Below, piece by piece: positions 1,398-15,669 of a stretch of 15,669 nt of DNA. Source of the DNA: Salpingoeca rosetta (lineage: Eukaryota; Protista; Choanoflagellata); NCBI GenBank assembly GCA_033442325.1, contig JAWQFM010000015.1, positions 699,190 through 714,858 on the forward strand, read 5' to 3'. Positions within the stretch are counted from its first letter, which is position 1; each line of letters opens with the position of its first letter. The position numbers were made by a program, and so were the translations under genes. Under the pieces are notes generated by a model. It did not search any database and was not told the origin of the DNA. It saw only the letters and a program-made list of their open reading frames with translations.

Positions 1398-2248
1398 TCA
1401 GTGGAGGGCGTTCATGTGCATGCGCACGGCCCATCGCAGGGGCAGGCGTTTCTTGGTGGTGGGAACAACGTAGTCGTTGCGTTGGATGGGCTTGTTGCGG
1501 GGCCGCTGGTACGGTTCCTCCTGGTTGTGTTTGGGGGTTGGGGATGTGGGTGGGTGTGGGTGAGAGAGGGGCCTCGAAGGGGAATGGACGTGGTAGTGCA
1601 TGCGCACACAGACACAGACACACACACACACACACACACAGACACAGACACAGACACACACACACACACACAGACACGCAAGTACCTTTTGGTCTTCGAG
1701 CTGCTGCCTGACGCGGCGGCGGAGTTGGGCGTGCGCATCTTCACCGGGTGCCTTCTGCCGCTTCCACGCCTCTCGGTACCGCGACGCACGCGACACAATA
1801 TCTGCAAAGATCATGGCCGTGGCGGTGATGGTAATGGTGATGTGGTGGTGGTGGTGGTGGTGGTGGTGGTGAGGGGGGTTGGGGTTTGAAGGAGAGCTGG
1901 TAGTTGCCATTGCAATCAAACACGCAATCAAGTCCATATGCACGCACACGCACATACACAGAGACACGCACACATGACACACATGACACACACACACATA
2001 CACACACACACGCAATTCTACCTGTCTTTGGGCGGGTGGGCTTGACGCGCATGTCGCGTGGCGGGATGAAGGAGGTGCGGTCTGCGAGCGGTTTGATCTC
2101 CTCCACATCCGGGACCGGCGGCAGCGGGTGGCCTTGAAACCCCTCGCTCTGGGAGGAAGTGGGGGGGGGGAGTGAAATGAGGGAAGGTGAGGAAGGTGGA
2201 AGGGTAGAATGAGGAAGGTGAGATGGCAACATGTAGGAGTGCGTTATC

Positions 2249-2283
<35 letters not shown>

Positions 2284-2963
2284 AGCTGTACCGAGGCGTT
2301 GCTGATGTCGAGGTCGTACGGGTATCCGAGGTCCTCGTCCGCGTACAGGTCCACTTCGTCAGGGCCAACGTCCGAATACAGATCAGACTGCACCGTCATG
2401 TTCTCCATCTGTTATGGGGCGGGGTATGAAGGGGGTAGTGGGGTTTGAGGTGTGAGGATCGTGCCTTTTGTCAGGTTGCTGTGGTGGTGGTTCGTCATGG
2501 AGCAAAGCACACAAGCACACACACACACACAAACACATGACAGCAGTGTGGTCTGTATGCGTACGTCGTCCAGAAGATCGAGCAATCCGTCCTTCTCTTC
2601 TTGCACATCGTGCGCGACAGAGTCGAGGACCTGTGTGCGTGTCATAGAGGTTCAAGGAGAATGGGTTAGGCAAACATGGGGGAGAAGACAAGGCGCAAGT
2701 GCACAGACACAGACACAGACACACAGACACACAGACACACAGACACACAGACAGGCACACACATACACACAACAGACAGACACACACACACACACCGATC
2801 CATCCATCATGACTGTCTTGCGCCGTCGTGCGCCCATGGATGCCTGGCTGGTATTCAATGGTCGCAGCACATCAGCGCGCTTGCCTTTGGTGGTGGGAGG
2901 CAGTGAGTGAGGATGAGGATGAGGGAAGGGTGATGTGCCAGTGGCGAGACGACAAACACACGT

Positions 2964-3023
<60 letters not shown>

Positions 3024-3681
3024 ACACACACACACGCACACGAATACACAAGCACAAACACAGACACAGACACAGGTGCGCACACCTGGCGTGTGTCTTC
3101 TACTGCGGCGGTGCGGTTGTTGTGATTGTCTGCTCTGTGGCTGATGAGGGGAAGGTGCTTCGTGCTGGTGAGGTAATCGGTGGGCTGTTGATGTTGACGT
3201 TGATGGGGCAGATGCTGAGGTTGAGGAAGCAGAGGAGGACGGGCGACGCCTTGCCGAGCTTGTGCTCGTGTTCTCGCTGCCCTGTGCTTCATCGCTGCCC
3301 TCTGTTTCCTGCAGCGCCAACCTCACCAAGTCTTTGGTTGAAAGAGTGGAGAAGGACGATGACAGGATGGGTGAAAAGGGAGAACGGGGGAAGTGGGGGG
3401 GGGGGAAGGGACAAAGTAAGGCACGTTCGTGTTGAGGAGGTGGAGACAAGGAAGAAGGTAGTGCATTAGTGTAAGCACGGCAGACACGCAGACACACAGA
3501 CACAGACACACAGACACAGACACACACAGACACACACAGACACACACACACAGACACAAACACAGACACACACACAATACACACCTTGTGTAAAGTCGCT
3601 GAGTACGTCGTCGGGGACGTTGTAGTAGCCGAGTTGCGCCAGCTGTCGCCGCACATCCCGCACCGTGAACCACACAGCCAT
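1398..3681 (-). CDS. HYLS1: HYLS1-like centriolar/ciliogenesis protein (hydrolethalus syndrome 1 family), 8 exons, 326 aa
   Basis: Exons on the minus strand: 3681-3585, 3331-3086, 2884-2796, 2630-2565, 2408-2292, 2148-2022, 1801-1686, 1520-1398. All introns are GT-AG; 981 nt, in frame. The C-terminus SFIPPR..KTDIVSRASRYREAWKRQKAPGEDAHAQLRRRVRQQL..RNDYVVPTTKKRLPLRWAVRMHM matches the HYLS1 C-terminal box (DPV-RY--Y---W-----PGE--H--LRW-VR..N-Y-VPT-KKR--LRW-VR). The N-terminus MAVWFTVRDVRRQLAQLGYYNVPDDVLSDFTQDLVRL resembles the N-terminal helix of long HYLS1 homologs. Confidence 0.9.
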
Positions 3682-3793: not shown

Positions 3794-5853
<2,060 letters not shown>

Positions 5854-6821: not shown

Positions 6822-8549
6822 TCATGCAATGTGCTGGATGCGGCGATCAAGGACGAACTTGGGCACTGCAAAGCGCTGCCCGTCCGGCCAATAAAACTGC
6901 CGGCTCGTCGGCGTCTCTGCCCGGGGCTCGCACGACAGTGGCGATGATGATGACGGGCGTGGGGGCGACGTGGGTGGCGGCGCTGGTGCATGTGCCTGCG
7001 AGTCGTGTTGGCTGCGGCCTTGCAGGTGTTGCAGCAGTTGCATCGCGTGAAGTGGCTGCTGGTGGTGGTGCTGGTGTTGCCTGGTGTGGTGCTGCTGCGT
7101 GGGTGGCGCCTTTCCTGGCGATGACATCACTGCTCGTGTCGCTGTCACCTTTGCACGGGACCGCCGCACGTCCGCGTTGCCGCTGCTGTCGCTCTGCGAT
7201 CGCTGATCAAGATGGGCAGCCCCATGCTTCGCCCCTCCACGTCCACGTCCACGTCCATACGAATATTTCTGGTACTCATCCTGCTTCTGGTGCTGATCTG
7301 GCTTCTGTTGCTTATCACTACCACCAACGCCAATACCATCACCACCAGGTGTGGCGGCAACGGCTGGGCCGCCGTTGGTTAAAAACTGCAGCAGGTGCGT
7401 TCCCTCCAGCGATGCCCCCACACCACCACCGCCACCAGTGTGTCTGCTGTGTTCGCGGGCTTTGGAGCCGCTGCTCTTTGATCGCGGGCGGATGTCATCC
7501 CCGTTCGATGCGGTTGCCTTTCCTTTCGCGCGGCTCTTGCCTGGTGTCGTCTTGCCTGCAGTCGCCGTGGCGGCCCTCCTTGATCCTGATGCCGATGACC
7601 TTGATGTTGATGCTGCTGCTGATGATGCCGGCGCTGATGATGGCACGTGACCGGGCCGCTCGCTGCCCTGTGCGTTCTTCTCGCGCCTCTTCTTTGCTCG
7701 CTTGGCCTTTGTGGGCGTCTTGGAGTGGCGGGAGGTCGTGGCGGCCTTGGGTTGTGTCCGCTCCGTCTGCTGATGCTCCTGTTGTTGTGCTGTCTGCTGC
7801 TGCTGTTCGTGTTGTTGTTCGTAACGATGATGATGATGATGATGATGCGCGTGACCTGCTGCGGTCGTCGTAGTCCTGGTTACTGGCGCGGTTCCATACT
7901 CGTTGTACAGGTGGAGCGGCGGTCGCGTCGGCGCCATCGTCGTCATCGCTGTGGCCACGGCGGTCTTGATCGTCTTTCCTGACGACGATCGCGGGGATGG
8001 GCGGTGGTGGCGCGTGCCGTTGGTTCGCACCTTTGATGGGGAGGTGGCGGTTGCAGTTGCGGGTGGTGTGATGGGAGAGGCATCTTCTTGCGCCATCTGC
8101 TTGTGATGAGTCACGGCGACGGAGGTACTGGGCGCGGTGGAGGGGGACGAGGAAGGGGACACGGCGAGCGAGGTGAAGGGGACAGAGGCAACGTCGTAGC
8201 CAAGCGGAATCTCAAAGGGCGAGGAGTAGGCGGTGTTGCCGGCGCTGCCGCTGCTCCCCACGGCGATGGACGAGATGGGCCCATTGCTCATGGGGTCGCG
8301 GAAGAACTGGTCTGGGCGGCCGTGCGGCTGCTGGTGGCGCGGGCGTTGGTGATGGGTGCGAGGGTGCGATGATGGTGCTGGGGGTGGTCGTGGTGCGGGG
8401 CCCTGTGCGGGGCGAAACGGGCTGCGGTGCGGACTAGGGTGCGGCAGGGCCGGGTGAGCTGGGCCAAAGGGAGGCGTGAACACCGAAGGTGGCGGGTACG
8501 CAGAGTGCTGTCCGCGCATGGCGGGATATTGCTGGTGGGGATGTGACAT
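6822..8549 (-). CDS. Hypothetical, largely disordered Pro/Ser/Thr/His/Gln-rich protein (~575 aa from ATG 8549; start uncertain)
   Basis: The frame is open from 8687 to 6822 (621 codons), lacks the dinucleotide microsatellites that mark introns in this window, and has triplet-type repeats typical of its exons. No recognisable domain. A candidate upstream intron at 8840-8666 (AAG|GTGAGC...TTGCAG|AC) suggests a spliced 5' leader. Confidence 0.65.
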   Translation of the reverse strand: MSHPHQQYPAMRGQHSAYPPPSVFTPPFGPAHPALPHPSPHRSPFRPAQGPAPRPPPAPSSHPRTHHQRPRHQQPHGRPDQFFRDPMSNGPISSIAVGSSGSAGNTAYSSPFEIPLGYDVASVPFTSLAVSPSSSPSTAPSTSVAVTHHKQMAQEDASPITPPATATATSPSKVRTNGTRHHRPSPRSSSGKTIKTAVATAMTTMAPTRPPLHLYNEYGTAPVTRTTTTAAGHAHHHHHHHRYEQQHEQQQQTAQQQEHQQTERTQPKAATTSRHSKTPTKAKRAKKRREKNAQGSERPGHVPSSAPASSAAASTSRSSASGSRRAATATAGKTTPGKSRAKGKATASNGDDIRPRSKSSGSKAREHSRHTGGGGGVGASLEGTHLLQFLTNGGPAVAATPGGDGIGVGGSDKQQKPDQHQKQDEYQKYSYGRGRGRGGAKHGAAHLDQRSQSDSSGNADVRRSRAKVTATRAVMSSPGKAPPTQQHHTRQHQHHHQQPLHAMQLLQHLQGRSQHDSQAHAPAPPPTSPPRPSSSSPLSCEPRAETPTSRQFYWPDGQRFAVPKFVLDRRIQHIA

Positions 8550-9051
8550 GCGTTGTTTGCATGTGCGAAATTGTTGTTGTTGTTGTTGTTGTGTGGCTGT
8601 GGATGTAGCGTTGGTGTTGGTGTTGGTGGGGGGGGGGATTGGGGAACCAGGATGAGGAAGAAGGTCTGCAATGAAATGACCATACACGCCAAATATGATG
8701 GTTTGTGTGAGTCAGATGGATGGTTTCAAATCATGTCGCACAACAACGAAACAAAAAAAAAAACGTAAACAAGCAAAGAGACACACCAACGCGTGTGGTG
8801 ATCGTTGCGTGGCTGGGTGTGCGTGCACGCACGCGCTCACCTTGTGTGGGAGAAATGGAGGGTAGTTGTGGATGTGTGTGCGTGTTTGCTCTGGTGTGGG
8901 GGGGGGGGAAGCACAACAGAAGATACACACGGACGATTGATGGTGGGGGGGGGGTTATCAGGGTTGGTTTGTTGTTGTGTGGAGGCACACGGACGGATAA
9001 AGCGACACACACACACAAGCAAGAAGAAAAGGCGAACAACGCAGCAACCGA

Positions 9052-9105
9052 CCAATCCGGAAAATTATATGAAGACATTCGCCATTTATCCGTAACCTCG
9101 CCAAT
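9052..9105 (+). promoter_or_regulatory. Paired CCAAT boxes in the divergent promoter of the two long single-ORF genes
   Basis: CCAATCC at 9052 and at 9101, flanking an AT-rich AAAATTATAT (9061-9070), about 140-200 bp upstream of ATG 9247. Confidence 0.35.
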
Positions 9106-9246
9106 CCTGGGTTGGTTGCGTTGTGTTGTGGTTTGGCATGCGAGAACAAGAAGCCACCCACCAAGCGAGCGAGGAGGAGCCAAGAAAGCAACAAAGACAA
9201 ACGGACGACAAGGACGACGCGCAGCCGCAGCAGCAGCAGCAGCGCG

Positions 9247-12200
9247 ATGCGAGCAAGACGCACGCTGGTGGCTGTGGTTGTGGCTGTGGCGGTGATCGCC
9301 ATGGCAGTGACGAGCGTGCAGGCGAGGGTCTTGGTGGGACAGGGACCAAAGGCGCCGAAGACCGATTTGGCGTTTCACAATGAACAGGCGCCAGGCGCCT
9401 CCGCCGCCACCACAACCACAACCAATACCACCACATCCACCAGCACCACTGTGGCGACGACTGTCATGCAGCCACAACACCGCATGGTCGTTTCAACAAC
9501 CGCAACCACAACAGCAGCAACCACCACAACCACAACTGCTGCTGCCAACAAGAAGACAGCCGCAACCACAGGTGCAGCAACCACCACCACAACAACCGCA
9601 ACCACCACCACCACCACAACAACAACCACAGCAGCAGACGTCAACAAGACAACAACGACGACGGAGCAGAGGTTCAACATCTTTGGTGATTTCCGTCCCA
9701 ATCCACCAACAACTACCACGCGAGCGCGGGCAACGACCACCGGGACAGCGTCCGATCGCGTTGCAGACAAAACGCCAACGACAACAACAGATGGGCTTCG
9801 GCCATTCGTTGGTGGCACCACCACAACGGGCGTGCGGCCACCACCGCCCGATGCACTGACAACGATTACCACGGCAAAACCAGCGGCGCCGCCACCACAC
9901 ACAACAACAACAACAACAACAACGACGACGACGACAACAACAACAGACCGACATCCACAGGCAACAATCACGCGCATTTCCTCCAGCACGAGCGCCAACA
10001 ACGAAGGTCTGACCGTTGCTCCAACCCCGCCAACCACGGTCCCTGACGACAGGCCTCCGCGGGATCCGGGGCTGTTGGGATCGGAGTGGGTTGCCATTGG
10101 CAGTGTTGTGGGCATTGTGGGCCTCATTGTGGGCATCTTCCTCATGCTTCGCACCCGCGGGAGCAGGCGCCAGGACCGCTACCACCTGCCGCAGATTGAG
10201 CTGCACCACCTCCATCAGGGTGGCAGTCGTCATGCACATGGCCACAGACACAGTGCTGGCAGCGGGGGTGCAGGCCGCGGCAACAAGTTTGCACCCTACA
10301 TCGATGGGGACGCATCTGTGATTGCGGACACGGCGGTCGTGGCGCCCGTGCCCGTGACGATCCAGCCGGAGCATGGCGATATGCGCACACGCCCACACGC
10401 GCACGCCCACACGCCGCAGTTTGTTGATGCAGACGGGCGCCCGGTCGCGAAGCGAACGAAGAAGGGCAGTGGCGATGGTCGCAGTTGTGTTGGTGGCAAT
10501 GGTGAAGATGGGTTGGCGGTGCAGGGCGAGTTGTTGCAGCAGCAGCACGAGCACATGATGTCCATCTTCACCGACATGCTGCCGACGTTTGGCGATGGCG
10601 GGAGCGGAAGCATGCTGCACGATCACCAGCGCCAGCAGCCGCATCAGCACAGACACATGCACAGGCAGCACCAGCTGTTGCACTCGTGCGAGTCTGAGGT
10701 GCAGCTGCTGCCGCCCTCACCGTCGGCATCCCCGCTTGACGAAGCGATGCCATTGTGGCCGGTCGTATCGGCCTCATCCACATCCACTATGACAACCACC
10801 ACCACGACTGCCTCCATGGCAACCAGCACCAGTCACACCACCGCCACCACCGCCAGCACCAATCACACCACCGCCAGCACCAGTCACACCACCGCCAGCA
10901 CCGGTACAGCTACGGCGGGAGTGACAGGGGCGGCGCCTGCGCTGTGCGATTCACTGCTGTCGCTTGGGTGCGTGGACGATGCGTGGGACGTGGGGAAGGA
11001 GGATGGCGCGGGGAGTGGTGGTGATGGGCAGGGTGTTGATGGAGGTGATGACAGGGTAATGGAGGGTGGCTGCGCGAAGCGTGCCAGCAGCACAGGTAGT
11101 GGGAGCCATGCAAGCAGCGGCAGCAGCCCAGGCAGTGGGGTGTCCGTGAGCGGTGGCAGTGGTGTTGAGGGAGGTGCACGGGATGCAGGGCGAGAGGCGT
11201 ACTTGGAGATGGCGCTGGCGCTGCTGGCAAAGGTCAACGCGTACAACAGCAGCCGATACGGCGACACGCCCAGCGACAGCGACAGCGACGCAAAGGAGGC
11301 GAGCGACGACGCGCACAGCCACAGCACGGGCACCAACGACAGCAGCACGAGCCCTGTGCTGGAGGAGGCAAGCGATGGTGTGCACGAGGGCGTGCATGAT
11401 GTGAGTGGAGTGGCGACGGACCCGCGGGTGCTGGAGGTTGACGCTGCGCTGCTGCTGTCGTGCGCGTGTGTTCTCGATCGCATGGACGGCCTGTGCGCAG
11501 CAGCGAAGCTGCACCCCGTGCTGGACGTGACGAGCAACGACGGTGATGGTGATGGTGATGGTGATGTTGATGGTGATGGTGATGATGGTGATGGTGTTGG
11601 TGCGGCTGCTGAGGAGGAGGAGGGGATGAGAAGTGTTGACGGGAATCGTGCTGGTCGTGCACAGCAGCGTGATAAGCAAGAACAGACGACAACGACAGCA
11701 CCAGCGGCAATGCTGGCGAGAACAAGGGCGAAAATGGCCAAGACGGGCCTGCTGCGGGTAAATGTACTGCAGCTGTTGGCCAAGGGTCGGTTATCGCACA
11801 GCGTGGGCAAGGCGCTGCTGCACTTTCTCAAGACCAGCGACATCATAGCCACCCCCGCATATGTGGACGAGTGTGACACGAGCGGACACACGCCGCTCAT
11901 GAATGCGTGCATGCTTGGGCACGAAGACGTGGCGGCCGTTCTCGTGCAGCGGCTGGGCGCCAACGTCATGATGCAAGACGGATACGAGCGCACGTGCCTG
12001 CACCAGGCGGTCATCTACCAGCAGCACGCCATTGTGTCGATGCTGCTGCTGCTGCGGTGGCAGCAGTCTGCGCGGGGCATGTACGCGTCGCTGATCCACA
12101 CACGCGACCGCAACGGGTGGCCGCCGCTGATATGGGCGGTGGTGCTGGAGGATGCGCGCAGCGTCACGGACCTGGTTGGCGCGGCGCACCACGACGCAGG

Positions 12201-12519
12201 CACGGGCACCTCGCGCATGCCGGTGGTGGACAAGGATGCGCTGACGACGCGCGCAGGCAGCACGTGCCTGCACGTGGCGGCGGAGCGCGGGCTGGTGGAG
12301 ATGGCGCGAACCATCTGCGATGCGTGCACGCGCACGTCGCTCATGATGCTGCTGCACCTGAAAGACAGCCAGCGGCAGGACGTGTTTGCGGTTAACGCGT
12401 GCAAGCTGCACGATGCGCAGCAGCATGGCGCCCACGCCGACGCGCACCACACCAGCACCCACGCGCACATTGGCCGCATCCTCATGCAGGCCAAGCAGCG
12501 CGTCTTTACTGCGACGTGA
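9247..12519 (+). CDS. Intronless type I membrane protein: signal peptide, Thr-rich mucin-like ectodomain, TM helix, NLS-like motif, C-terminal ankyrin repeats (~1090 aa)
   Basis: ATG 9247 gives a classic signal peptide (MRARRTLVAVVVAVAVIAMAVTSVQA). Poly-Thr/Pro stalk at ~9400-10050. Hydrophobic helix WVAIGSVVGIVGLIVGIFLML (10087-10149) followed by basic RTRGSRR. Basic cluster RPVAKRTKK (10438-10464). Ankyrin consensus units at ~11863-12330: DTSGHTPLMNACMLGHEDVAAVLV, DGYERTCLHQAVIYQQHAIVSMLL, DRNGWPPLIWAVV, TRAGSTCLHVAAERGLVEMARTI. Confidence 0.85.
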   Translation: MRARRTLVAVVVAVAVIAMAVTSVQARVLVGQGPKAPKTDLAFHNEQAPGASAATTTTTNTTTSTSTTVATTVMQPQHRMVVSTTATTTAATTTTTTAAANKKTAATTGAATTTTTTATTTTTTTTTTAADVNKTTTTTEQRFNIFGDFRPNPPTTTTRARATTTGTASDRVADKTPTTTTDGLRPFVGGTTTTGVRPPPPDALTTITTAKPAAPPPHTTTTTTTTTTTTTTTDRHPQATITRISSSTSANNEGLTVAPTPPTTVPDDRPPRDPGLLGSEWVAIGSVVGIVGLIVGIFLMLRTRGSRRQDRYHLPQIELHHLHQGGSRHAHGHRHSAGSGGAGRGNKFAPYIDGDASVIADTAVVAPVPVTIQPEHGDMRTRPHAHAHTPQFVDADGRPVAKRTKKGSGDGRSCVGGNGEDGLAVQGELLQQQHEHMMSIFTDMLPTFGDGGSGSMLHDHQRQQPHQHRHMHRQHQLLHSCESEVQLLPPSPSASPLDEAMPLWPVVSASSTSTMTTTTTTASMATSTSHTTATTASTNHTTASTSHTTASTGTATAGVTGAAPALCDSLLSLGCVDDAWDVGKEDGAGSGGDGQGVDGGDDRVMEGGCAKRASSTGSGSHASSGSSPGSGVSVSGGSGVEGGARDAGREAYLEMALALLAKVNAYNSSRYGDTPSDSDSDAKEASDDAHSHSTGTNDSSTSPVLEEASDGVHEGVHDVSGVATDPRVLEVDAALLLSCACVLDRMDGLCAAAKLHPVLDVTSNDGDGDGDGDVDGDGDDGDGVGAAAEEEEGMRSVDGNRAGRAQQRDKQEQTTTTAPAAMLARTRAKMAKTGLLRVNVLQLLAKGRLSHSVGKALLHFLKTSDIIATPAYVDECDTSGHTPLMNACMLGHEDVAAVLVQRLGANVMMQDGYERTCLHQAVIYQQHAIVSMLLLLRWQQSARGMYASLIHTRDRNGWPPLIWAVVLEDARSVTDLVGAAHHDAGTGTSRMPVVDKDALTTRAGSTCLHVAAERGLVEMARTICDACTRTSLMMLLHLKDSQRQDVFAVNACKLHDAQQHGAHADAHHTSTHAHIGRILMQAKQRVFTAT

Positions 12520-12707
12520 TTGATGTGTGTATTGGTGTGGTTGATGTGTGTATTGGTGTGCGATAGTGTGTGCGTGTGTGTGTGGTGTGTGTGTGTGTGT
12601 GTGCGATAGTGTGTGGTGTGTGTGTGTTGACATGACTGTGAGCGAAAGGTGTTTGCCTGCCAGGATTTTGTGACCCGACATGATAATTCGTAGCGCGACT
12701 GGACCAG

Positions 12708-12718
12708 AATAAAATAAA
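12708..12718 (+). terminator. Overlapping AATAAA hexamers: candidate poly(A) signal of the ankyrin receptor gene
   Basis: AATAAAATAAA lies ~190 bp after the stop at 12519 and ~85 bp before the USO1 ATG. It could instead be an AT-rich promoter element of USO1. Confidence 0.35.
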
Positions 12719-12803
12719 TTCTTCTACTGCAGCAGAGAGGCAACGGCTGGTGTCTGTTGTGGAGCTGTTGTGTTTGGCACCCGAGAAAGTGAAAGGAGCG
12801 AGG

Positions 12804-14923
12804 ATGAGCTTTCTGTTTGCTGGCAAGGCCGACGAGCCTGAGCCAACGCCAGCCGATATGGTGTGTGTGTGTATGTGTACGACGGAAGGTGTTTGGGGGA
12901 GGAGAGCTGTTCTGAGGGATGGGTGCTGGTGTTTTTGAGAAGGATGTTCTTCATGTCTGGATGACTGGATGACTGAATGACTGAATGACTGGCGCATGCA
13001 TCTGTCTCGCTCCCTCACACACTTATGCACATGCACGCTGTAGGTGGAGAAGCTGCTGACGCGGCTGAGCACGGCAGTGAACCTGGATGACAGGCGTGGG
13101 GCCGTGCGCGGGCTCAGGCTGTACAGCCAGAAATACAAGGTGCGTGGTTGAGAGTGTGTGCGCGTGCGTGCGTGCGTGCGTGTGTGTGTGTGTGAGTGTG
13201 TGAGTGTGTGTGAGTGTGTGTGAGTGTGTATGTGTGTGTGTGAGTGTGTGCGTGTGTGTGAGTGTGTGCGTGTGTGTGAAACAGAGTGCGTGTGCGTGTG
13301 TATGTGCGCCTGAGAGACGGTGTGAGTGGGTACATTTTAGATGTTGGACGCTCATGAAGCCCCACTGTCCCTCGTTCTACAGGTGGTTGTGGGCAGTCAG
13401 GCCATCATGGCGCTGGTGGACGTGCTGAAGGACGATCGAGCGGACGTGGAAATGTGCAACCTGGCGCTGGAGACGCTCATCAACCTCACCGCCCCAGACA
13501 AGGAGGTGAGGCACCACCGCGAAGAGGAGAGTCATGAGGCAAACCAGGAAGAGGAGAAACACAGGAGATGCCATCAAGCGAGCGCATCAGTGGTGAGGTT
13601 TAGCAGGTAGAATATGCGCAGCTCACGGTCAACTGCTTTGCATTGTCCCGACAGTATCCGGAAGGAGAGACCCCACCTGACACGGACACGGGCGTCATGT
13701 TCACGGAGATGTTTGTCAAGGAGCCGGTGGGTTTGTTGCTGGGGGCGGGGGTGGTGGTTGAGGTGGAAGTGGTAGAGAGGATTGGAGGAGGTCCCGGGAG
13801 AGAGGACTGCTGCTGTGTTGGGGTGTATGTGTAAGCGCATATGCGTGTGTTTGCAGTGATGAGTTAGCTTCCTAACATCTCGTCGTGACTGCTCGCTGCT
13901 GAATCGCTTGCACAGGACCACGTGTTGCTGCTGCTGTCACTGCTGGAGGAGAAGGACCTGCACGTGAGGTGGGGAGTGAGGCTGTGTGGTCGCTGTTTGA
14001 TTGTATGCTGGTTGCTGTGCAGTTTGCATGTTGTGTGCTGCTTGTGGTGTTTGTGAAACGTGTATTGCGTGTTGCGTGCTCAGAGGGTGCGACATGGGTG
14101 CATCATGGGCGCTGATAATGTGATGGTGATGTGACGGCAGGCTGAACACGGTGAAGCTGCTCACAAATCTCTTCAACAACCGGCCAAAGCTGCTGCAGGT
14201 GAGAGGCGTGGGGTGAAGTGAAGTGACACGTGTGTGTGTGTACGTGCGTGTGTGTGCGTGTGAGTGTACGTGCGAATGTGTGCGTGTGAGTGTACGTGTG
14301 TGTGTGTACGTGTGTGTTTACGTGTGTATGTGCGTGTGTTTAATGTGCGTGTGTATGTGCGTGCGTGGATGTGTGCATGAATCCTCTCACGCCTGCTTCC
14401 ATGTGCGGCAACGGTTGTGTAGGAGAGCATCATGCTTGAGCCCGTTGCGTGTGCGCGCCTGATGGACCTGCTACAGGAGCGTAGAGACATCATCAGGAAC
14501 GAGGTGTGTGTTGTGTGTACATATGTATACTCTTGTGTGTGTGTGTGTGTTCGTGTGTGGGGACTTGTGTGTACATCGCGTGCGTGCCTACGTGTGGGGA
14601 CACCAGGCATGGAACCAGTGTGGGAAAGTGTGGGTAGTGTTCAAGGGAGACGGAGTGACACACTTTGATGATTTCAACACATTGACACGCACGCACACAT
14701 ACAATCATGCGCATGCGTGCGTTGCAGGGCCTGCTGCTGATGATTGGACTGACGAAAGGCAACACGCAGATCCAGAAGTTGGTGGCGTTTCAAAACGCAT
14801 TTGAGGAGACAGTCAACATCATTCAGGAGGTGATGTGTACATGCGGGCGCAGTAGTAGTGTGAACGGGAGGGGCAGTGGTGTGCTTTGTGTGTGTGTGTG
14901 TGTGCTTTGAGTGTGTGTGCTTT

Positions 14924-14977
<54 letters not shown>

Positions 14978-15664
14978 GCGCTGATGAGAGGAGGGAAGGA
15001 GTCGGAAGGGCAAACCCCACGACCGCTTTTCTCACATGCTGCAACGTACGCGCATGTATCCATGTGCACGTGTGTGTTTGATGGCGTGTGACAGGAGGGC
15101 AACAGCGAGGGCGGGATCATCGTCGACGACTGCCTGAAGCTGCTCCTCAACCTCGTCATCGACAACACCTCAAACCAAAACTTCTTCCGGGAGTCCAGGT
15201 GTGTGTGTGTGTGTGTGAGTGCGTAAGAGTGAGTGAGTGAGTGAGTGAGTGAGTGCGTGAGTGAGTGAGTGGGCGAGTGAGTGCGTGAGTGCGTGAGTGC
15301 GTGCGTGCGTGCGTGAGTGAGTGAGTGAGTGAGTGAGTGGGTGAGTGAGTGAGTGAGTGAGTGTGAGTGTGTATGTGTGTGTGTGAGCGTGTGTGTGCGT
15401 GTGTGTATTCTTGGGGTGACGTTGTTGAAGGGGAGAGCGAGTTTGTACGTCTGTTTGCTTATATTCACACTCAAATCCGCCACGCTCATTCCCTCCCCCT
15501 GGCCCCCATGCCATGACCACCGCTGCACCAGTCTGTTCCCGCGGCTGGTGCCGTTTTTCCAGCAGACGGACCCTGCGGCGGAGGAGTGGGGCCAGCAGCG
15601 CGTCAGGAACGTCGTCAAGATGCTTGAGTTCATTCGCGTCTTCGTTGCCCCAGCCGTCTCCCAG
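12804..15664 (+). CDS. USO1: General vesicular transport factor p115/Uso1, N-terminal armadillo head (partial; continues past the window)
   Basis: Exons: 12804-12860, 13044-13139, 13383-13505, 13655-13726, 13916-13968, 14141-14198, 14423-14503, 14728-14829, 15095-15198, 15532-15664 (last boundary provisional). GT-AG and in frame. Family motifs: LDDRRGAVRGLR, RLMDLLQERRDIIRNEGLLL, IQKLVAFQNAFE, EGNSEGGIIVDDCLKLLLNL..NTSNQNFFRE. Confidence 0.95.
15227..15370 (+). repeat. (GAGT)n/(GCGT)n tetranucleotide microsatellite in USO1 intron 9
   Basis: Directly visible; produces many copies of GTGAGT. Confidence 0.9.
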
Positions 15665-15669
15665 GTGTT

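Follow-up and report, generated by a model that had tools for sequence, protein, structure and literature searches.

The choanoflagellate Salpingoeca rosetta carries, on contig JAWQFM010000015.1 of assembly GCA_033442325.1, an intronless gene whose product of 1090 amino acid residues (aa) combines a mucin-like stalk, a single predicted transmembrane (TM) helix, a long low-complexity tail and a C-terminal ankyrin-repeat domain. The gene occupies positions 9247–12519 of the plus strand in the stretch of 15,669 nucleotides analyzed here (contig positions 699,190–714,858, forward strand; hereafter the window). We estimate a probability of roughly one half (0.5) that the product is a resident type I membrane glycoprotein, with an O-glycosylated stalk in the cell coat and a tethered ankyrin domain that docks cytosolic partners. 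The initial annotation of this DNA had proposed a topology like that of Notch. The order of a TM helix followed by ankyrin repeats was confirmed, whereas kinship with Notch was unsupported in the comparisons of sequences and structural models described below.

One intronless transcript encodes the membrane and ankyrin parts

The gene lies in a stop-free frame at 9112–12519 (plus strand), which has 1135 codons and is the longest open reading frame (ORF) of the window, the next longest having 621 and 529 codons. At the composition of the window (56.8% G+C, with a stop probability of 0.037 per codon), the probability that 1135 codons remain open by chance is approximately 4e-19. The main coding sequence begins at the earliest in-frame ATG, at 9247. 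An exact-sequence look-up revealed that the public gene call on scaffold GL832969.1 of assembly GCA_000188695.1 is identical to the 1090-aa ORF and consists of a single exon, and the ESM Atlas contains the identical 1090-aa protein, letter for letter.

Transcription was analyzed with raw reads of the stranded RNA-seq run X24 (reverse-stranded), which were mapped to positions 8650–12850. The sense depth was about 0 up to 9072, reached 12.8 in the bin 9073–9213 and was between 15 and 87 in all bins from there to 12738. Reads over the upstream minus-strand gene were of opposite orientation only, providing an internal control for strandedness. No GT..AG splice joints were found among the RNA reads over 8650–12850. 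Candidate joints at 9244>10836 and 10859/12060 (opposite strands) were attributed to cross-mapping rather than splicing: they had non-canonical ends and short sides of 19–23 nt, they were located in CAG/CACCGC repeats, and each was also observed in run X3, which is probably DNA.

Two further runs, X17 and X19, behaved as RNA, with zero depth over the initial bins of the intergenic stretch upstream, while X3 behaved as DNA. The RNA-type contigs from X17 and X19 covered 9097/9115–9569, 9667–9886, 9951–11532, 11631–12559 and 12628–12731 (to 12731 in X17 and to 12709 in X19), and the breaks between them coincided only with repeats skipped by the mapping tool. The contig 9951–11532 extends from the last part of the stalk through the TM helix into approximately 460 aa of the tail. 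The continuous sense coverage without splice joints shows that the TM and ankyrin parts belong to one intronless sense-strand transcript. The initial annotation had named separate transcripts for the two parts as the finding that would contradict its one-gene architecture, and the RNA reads and the identical public single-exon call both agree with a single gene.

The depth of RNA was approximately 1.5- to 2-fold higher in the 3′ half of the gene, and weak pile-ups of read starts or ends, of 8 molecules each, were present at 10704 and 11868. These features would be compatible with an annotation artefact in which a small gene for a mucin-like membrane protein and a gene for a cytosolic ankyrin protein are read as one ORF. 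Such an artefact is nevertheless hardly credible: no stop interrupts the 1090 codons, the sense coverage has no gap, the RNA contig 9951–11532 starts ahead of the TM helix and reaches far into the tail, the contigs break only at skipped repeats, and the public model is also a single gene.

The features of the transcript are as follows.

9097–9246, plus strand: 5′ untranslated region (UTR), with the transcript start at about 9097–9115; the contigs begin at 9097 (X17) and 9115 (X19), and the depth in the bin 9073–9213 agrees
9138–9383, plus strand: out-of-frame upstream ORF of 81 codons, with its ATG at 9138, overlapping the main start codon at 9247 and lying within the transcribed 5′ end (ORF scan)
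9247–12519, plus strand: coding sequence, 1090 codons and a stop, in a single exon (ORF scan; identical public gene call; RNA reads without GT..AG joints)
12520–12731, plus strand: 3′ UTR containing a (GT)n microsatellite and AATAAA at 12708; the ends of RNA molecules pile up at 12704

A second in-frame ATG is present at 9301 (residue 19). Its Kozak-like context (GCCATGG) is stronger than that of the ATG at 9247, and initiation there would remove the signal peptide.

Stalk, membrane helix and cytoplasmic tail

The initial annotation had described, N-terminal to the ankyrin repeats, a signal peptide, a Thr/Pro-rich ectodomain of about 250 aa without Cys, one TM helix, a basic cluster and long disordered linkers. 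All of these were recovered by the analysis, with reservations concerning the meaning of the basic cluster, and were assigned to the following positions.

9247–9327, plus strand: signal-peptide-like N-terminus, residues 1–27 (hydropathy up to 2.66)
9328–10086, plus strand: mucin-like ectodomain, residues 28–280 (253 aa), assigned by composition and encoded by imperfect ACC/ACA repeats
10087–10155, plus strand: predicted TM helix, residues 281–303 (hydropathy of 2.67; flank charges)
10156–11748, plus strand: low-complexity linker rich in His, Gly, Ser and Asp, residues 304–834, probably disordered (Pfam, phmmer and the predicted local distance difference test, pLDDT, of AlphaFold)
10450–10464, plus strand: basic cluster KRTKK, residues 402–406, a candidate nuclear localization signal (NLS; motif scan)
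10744–10926, plus strand: cytoplasmic Thr/Ser-rich tract, residues 500–560, with 39% Thr (composition; a 21-nt tandem repeat lies at 10845–10902)
11542–11602, plus strand: (GGTGAT)n repeat encoding an acidic (Asp-Gly)n tract (tandem repeat scan); contigs and reads break here only through repeat skipping

The N-terminus consists of MRARR, a hydrophobic core of 16–17 residues with a Kyte-Doolittle peak of 2.66, and TSVQA|R, in that order. Cleavage after TSVQA is predicted from the small residues at −1 and −3. Besides this region, residues 281–303 constitute the sole hydrophobic stretch of the protein. They are flanked on the outer side by the acidic sequence DDRPPRD and on the inner side by the basic sequence RTRGSRRQDR. 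Because an acidic outer and a basic inner flank point to a type I orientation, the helix fits a topology with the N-terminus outside and the C-terminus inside.

The ectodomain between the two hydrophobic segments contains 36% Thr and 50% Ser, Thr and Pro in total, with nine Thr runs of 4–15 residues and two N-x-S/T sequons. It has no Cys, the first Cys of the protein being residue 414, and no folded domain; the segment 230–280 is of low complexity. Only Ank families reached the threshold in a Pfam search of the whole protein, and no SEA or other juxtamembrane cleavage domain was found by that search. Tandem Repeats Finder (TRF) detected only short imperfect arrays in the stalk, with periods of 3–33 nt and approximately 2–17 copies, corresponding to homopolymer-like Thr runs, and found none of the variable-number tandem repeat units of a Pro/Thr/Ser domain there. 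The composition of the stalk is truly mucin-like, and dense O-glycosylation is probable from its sequence.

Like transmembrane or signalling mucins and sialomucins such as MUC1, CD43 and Msb2/Hkr1, the protein has a type I arrangement, and its ectodomain lacks Cys, is rich in Ser, Thr and Pro and would be expected to be extended and O-glycosylated. The tails of MUC1, CD43 and Msb2/Hkr1-type proteins couple to intracellular partners, and release of the tail and its entry into the nucleus have been reported for MUC1 and CD43. These mucin and sialomucin tails are short (approximately 70–125 aa) and lack ankyrin repeats. A SEA autoproteolysis module is present in MUC1 and a conserved juxtamembrane domain in Msb2, but nothing similar to either was detectable in the S. 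rosetta protein with Pfam. The long tandem repeat units of mucins are also missing from its stalk according to TRF, the homopolymer-like Thr runs being present instead. Among choanoflagellate proteins, Sema-FN1 is likewise of type I and has a Ser/Thr-rich juxtamembrane stalk, but it carries folded ectodomains (Reeler, Sema, FN3 and SEA) and no ankyrin tail, whereas the stalk of the S. rosetta protein is its whole ectodomain (PMC8011033). Ser/Thr-rich stalks of other choanoflagellate surface proteins have been read as O-glycosylation sites embedded in the glycocalyx (PMC8011033).

The linker between the TM helix and the ankyrin domain spans approximately 530 aa. No Pfam family reached the threshold in residues 304–830, and residues 630–820 had pLDDT values of 28–52 in a second, longer AlphaFold model, in agreement with the disordered linkers of the initial annotation. 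Degenerate extra ankyrin repeats suspected by eye at residues ~640–680 and ~720–765 were rejected, Pfam being blank there and the pLDDT lying in the same range of 28–52.

The basic cluster had been placed about 95 aa into the tail and read as an NLS. The cluster itself is present: KRTKK sits 99 aa past the TM helix and does not flank the ankyrin domain, which is approximately 430 aa away, and its KRTK is the only match to K-K/R-x-K/R in the whole protein. As an NLS, this candidate carries little weight, because shuffling the 787-aa tail produced the K-K/R-x-K/R motif in 11% of cases and at least four basic residues within five in 10%.

An exhaustive phmmer search of the non-ankyrin tail (residues 304–870) against 1.84 billion representatives gave 0 hits. 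Together with the repetitive DNA, this finding bears on a tentative alternative that we regard as possible although doubtful, namely that the gene is young and fast-evolving, that only its ankyrin domain is functional, and that the Thr, His and Asp-Gly tracts are by-products of tri- and hexanucleotide expansion. The hydrophobic segments would then tether the protein to an internal membrane, such as that of the endoplasmic reticulum, the Golgi or vesicles. Imperfect repeats of ACC/ACA, CACCACCGC and GGTGAT make up the DNA that encodes the stalk and tail, and Thr tracts are found on the outer as well as the inner side of the membrane. The G+C content at third codon positions is 0.58 in the stalk and reaches 0.82 in the ankyrin part, which could reflect different histories of the two. 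The adjacent gene for a 565-aa protein is a further orphan of low complexity. Since the stalk is encoded by ACC/ACA repeats, the cytoplasmic tract is equally Thr-rich and the window is full of CA/GT microsatellites, the Thr-richness is in part a compositional or mutational habit of the genome. However, the ORF stays open over 3.3 kb through all of these repeats and is steadily expressed, the charges flanking the TM helix are well ordered, and the absence of Cys from the ectodomain together with its mixture of Pro, Ala and Thr is typical of functional mucin-like stalks.

Ankyrin domain, its relatives and comparison with Notch

The C-terminal part of the protein comprises two features.

11749–12357, plus strand: ankyrin-repeat domain, residues 835–1037, an N-cap repeat followed by four repeats (Pfam Ank_2, 6e-18; AlphaFold; Foldseek)
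12358–12516, plus strand: C-terminal His/Gln-rich segment, residues 1038–1090, modelled as two long low-confidence helices (AlphaFold pLDDT of 40–66)

Pfam Ank_2 was matched at 2e-13 with the whole protein and at 6e-18 with the C-terminal 290 aa, with which Ank (3e-14) and Ank_3 (3e-12) were also matched; all three families were above their curated cut-offs. AlphaFold was run twice, model 1 being based on a 13-row alignment (mean pLDDT of 74.9) and model 2 on a longer construct. Four helix-pair repeats at residues ~883–1037 were predicted with confidence, with pLDDT values mostly of 85–97; insertions are present in repeats 2 and 3. The domain has a further repeat, the N-cap at residues 835–863, with pLDDT values of 60–67 in model 1 and 72–86 in model 2. 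The claim of at least four ankyrin repeats in the initial annotation therefore holds, with the N-cap repeat added.

Among the top 60 phmmer matches to sequences of solved structures were DARPin fusions (up to 83 bits), ankyrin-1/2, tankyrase, MIB1 and NompC. The top 50 Foldseek matches in the PDB included five-repeat DARPins with a target-normalised TM-score of approximately 0.8, ANKRA2/RFXANK, gankyrin, GLP and IkB-beta, and the Foldseek probability was 1.00 for many ankyrin structures. Judged from its sequence and model, the ankyrin domain is of the generic consensus kind. It shares its fold and repeat number with ANKRA2/RFXANK, gankyrin, IkB and DARPins, but these proteins are soluble, whereas the S. 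rosetta module would hang from a membrane anchor on a long disordered tether.

The exhaustive search covered the non-ankyrin tail, and the ankyrin block was searched by the word-based method only. With the ankyrin region, the word-based search in the full-length size class returned 12 generic ankyrin hits of at most 65 bits, and the ankyrin domain alone, searched in a second size class, returned 2 weak generic hits. A metagenome scan yielded one unrelated 1125-aa ankyrin array of bacterial type, which was caught via the pattern NGWPPLIW, and the ESM Atlas contained only generic ankyrin clusters besides the protein itself. In the collections covered by the word-based method, the ankyrin block had no close ortholog or paralog, but a diverged ortholog could be missed in this way.

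The target protein itself is absent from the 15-billion-protein collection, in which the neighbouring PTSG_05947 is present, and blank searches there need a control. The collection searched does include proteins of S. rosetta, as well as at least one protein from a EukProt transcriptome. In a control search with the neighbouring HYLS1 ORF, only 2 true relatives of this widely conserved ciliary protein were recovered, which indicates that the word-based search is insensitive below approximately 40% identity. By these sequence comparisons, the non-ankyrin parts are orphan sequence and the gene is taken to be lineage-specific. The domain combination is unusual, assembled from generic parts and confined to a single species. 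The initial annotation had suggested that the protein may be an undescribed receptor, and we likewise found no description of it in the literature searched. By the order of genes counted from PTSG_05947, the locus tag of the target may be PTSG_05950; PTSG_05949, PTSG_05950 and PTSG_05951 were not mentioned in the papers or the supplement of Richter et al. that were searched.

The repeat number of Notch is seven, and its linker between the TM helix and the ankyrin repeats is approximately 100 aa long. The S. rosetta protein differs in both respects, having five repeats located approximately 530 aa from the membrane. The RAM region of Notch carries a hydrophobic-W-hydrophobic-P motif just after the membrane. 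A regular-expression scan found no such motif in the S. rosetta protein, and the only W-P of the tail, LWPV at residue 504, has the wrong spacing. Ligand-dependent cleavage at S2/S3 and nuclear action with CSL are further characteristics of Notch. Each EGF domain needs six Cys, and an ectodomain free of Cys cannot hold the disulfide-built EGF and LNR domains. Consistently, EGF, LNR (PF00066), NOD and NODP gave no Pfam match even at E ≤ 1–10.

In the published working definition, Notch has four elements in a fixed order, beginning with EGF repeats and a Notch/LNR domain and continuing with a TM helix and ankyrin repeats (PMC6040629, PMC2770060), and the S. rosetta protein has only the last two of these elements, the single TM helix followed by cytoplasmic ankyrin repeats. 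It thus resembles the Notch receptors of animals and the Notch-like genes of Mylnosiga fluctuans and Monosiga brevicollis in having a signal peptide, a single TM helix and ankyrin repeats in the same order, with a basic cluster in the tail, but it lacks the EGF, LNR/Notch and NOD/NODP domains, the ectodomain Cys and the RAM motif. No Notch chain was present among the top 60 phmmer or the top 50 Foldseek PDB matches of the ankyrin block, and no LNR-bearing or Notch protein was present among the significant hits of the word-based database searches with the ankyrin region. In these comparisons, the ankyrin sequence showed no greater closeness to Notch than to consensus ankyrins in general. Published trees of ankyrin and Notch sequences lack resolution (PMC6040629). 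The results suggest that the likeness to Notch is limited to layout.

Choanoflagellates do carry Notch-like genes: the M. brevicollis gene encodes a signal peptide, one EGF domain, two LNR domains, a TM helix and three ankyrin repeats (PMC2770060), and that of M. fluctuans encodes EGF, Notch, TM and Ank in the canonical order (PMC6040629). Given these genes and the TM-then-ankyrin order in common, the S. rosetta protein might be imagined as a degenerate true homolog of Notch, derived from a choanozoan ancestor with an EGF-LNR-TM-ANK arrangement in which the ectodomain was swapped for a Thr-rich stalk. This descent is very unlikely in view of the missing EGF, LNR, NOD and NODP matches, the Cys-free ectodomain and the missing RAM motif; the repeat number, the linker length, and the database and PDB matches without Notch also argue against it.

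Docking at the membrane, tail release and the neighbouring genes

In the arrangement that we favour, a resident type I membrane glycoprotein, the signal peptide would route the N-terminus to the secretory pathway. The Cys-free segment of 253 aa, rich in Thr, Pro and Ala, would lie on the luminal or extracellular side, where it would extend through the cell coat as a mucin-like stalk. The single TM helix would anchor the protein, and the disordered tail of approximately 530 aa would carry the compact five-repeat ankyrin domain into the cytoplasm. The protein would act in place as a membrane-anchored scaffold, with no cleavage required, and the ankyrin groove could dock one or more cytosolic partners, either cytoskeletal or signalling, beneath a glycocalyx patch. 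It would thereby parallel the transmembrane mucins and sialomucins that couple a glycosylated stalk to cytoplasmic adaptors, with the difference that the adaptor domain would be built in.

Several points weigh against this arrangement. We infer the glycosylation, the surface localisation and the signal-peptide cleavage alike, and the N-terminal core of 16–17 residues is long and could be an uncleaved anchor. The cytoplasmic tract at residues 500–560 is as Thr-rich as the stalk, and a Thr tract alone is not proof of a mucin role. For a protein that simply docks partners, a linker of 530 aa is unusually long, and it would suit a released fragment equally well. No orthologs were found in the searches above, and hence there is no sign of purifying selection on any part of the protein. 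There is also a small chance of an additional internal transcript start at the weak pile-ups.

In the model of cleavage and nuclear entry put forward by the initial annotation, the protein would be a receptor activated by proteolysis that converged on Notch (or on CD43 or MUC1): the stalk would be shed, the TM helix would be cut by an intramembrane protease, and the tail would enter the nucleus via KRTKK, where the ankyrin domain would serve as a co-regulator. We consider this unlikely. In its favour, the layout fits, since the protein is of type I and its single TM helix is followed by a basic cluster and then by ankyrin repeats at the C-terminus. A fragment set free by cleavage could well have a tail of this length and flexibility. 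The subunits of gamma-secretase are of ancient origin, with presenilin, nicastrin and APH1 reported in Holozoa (PMC2770060). Nevertheless, the basic motif occurs in 11% of shuffled tails and is far from the ankyrin domain (about 430 aa), no RAM-like motif is present, Pfam revealed no juxtamembrane SEA, NRR or other domain for the control of cleavage, and the ankyrin repeats are generic.

A related proposal is a Notch-independent, convergent pathway from mucin to nucleus, in which strain on the stalk or its shedding would permit intramembrane cleavage and the released ankyrin tail would modulate transcription in the nucleus; we judge this quite improbable. The part of a sensor, which the initial annotation had given to the stalk, is purely inferred. 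If release of the tail were true, the protein would represent an independent invention of Notch-like logic. The gene bears on the open question of how membrane receptors were coupled to nuclear or cytoskeletal outputs before animals. The layout of stalk, TM helix and ankyrin repeats can arise from generic parts without Notch ancestry, which cautions against using architecture alone as evidence of homology.

Several other genes were recognized in the window. Upstream of the target, a divergent gene on the minus strand (6822–8519) encodes a protein of 565 aa that is rich in Gln, His, Pro and Ser and contains a strong basic cluster, KAKRAKKRREK; it matched no Pfam family and is a low-complexity orphan. 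The upstream region of approximately 730 bp at 8520–9246 is common to this minus-strand gene and the target. Farther upstream, a ZFAND2-like gene with two zf-AN1 domains and introns is located at 3794–5853 (plus strand), and a HYLS1-like centriole/cilium gene, PTSG_05947 (HYLS1_C, 9e-24), also with introns, is located at 1398–3681 (minus strand).

The downstream gene at 12804–15669 (plus strand) encodes the vesicle-tethering factor USO1/p115, its exon at 14686–14907 matching p115 chains in the PDB with an E-value of 2.7e-5. The RNA coverage hardly falls between the 3′ end of the target (about 12704) and the start of the USO1/p115 gene, and the introns of the latter are filled with (GT)n/(GTGC)n microsatellites. 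Throughout the window, dense CA/GT dinucleotide microsatellites fill the intergenic regions and introns, and they yield many long spurious ORFs that read HTHTHT or CVCVCV.

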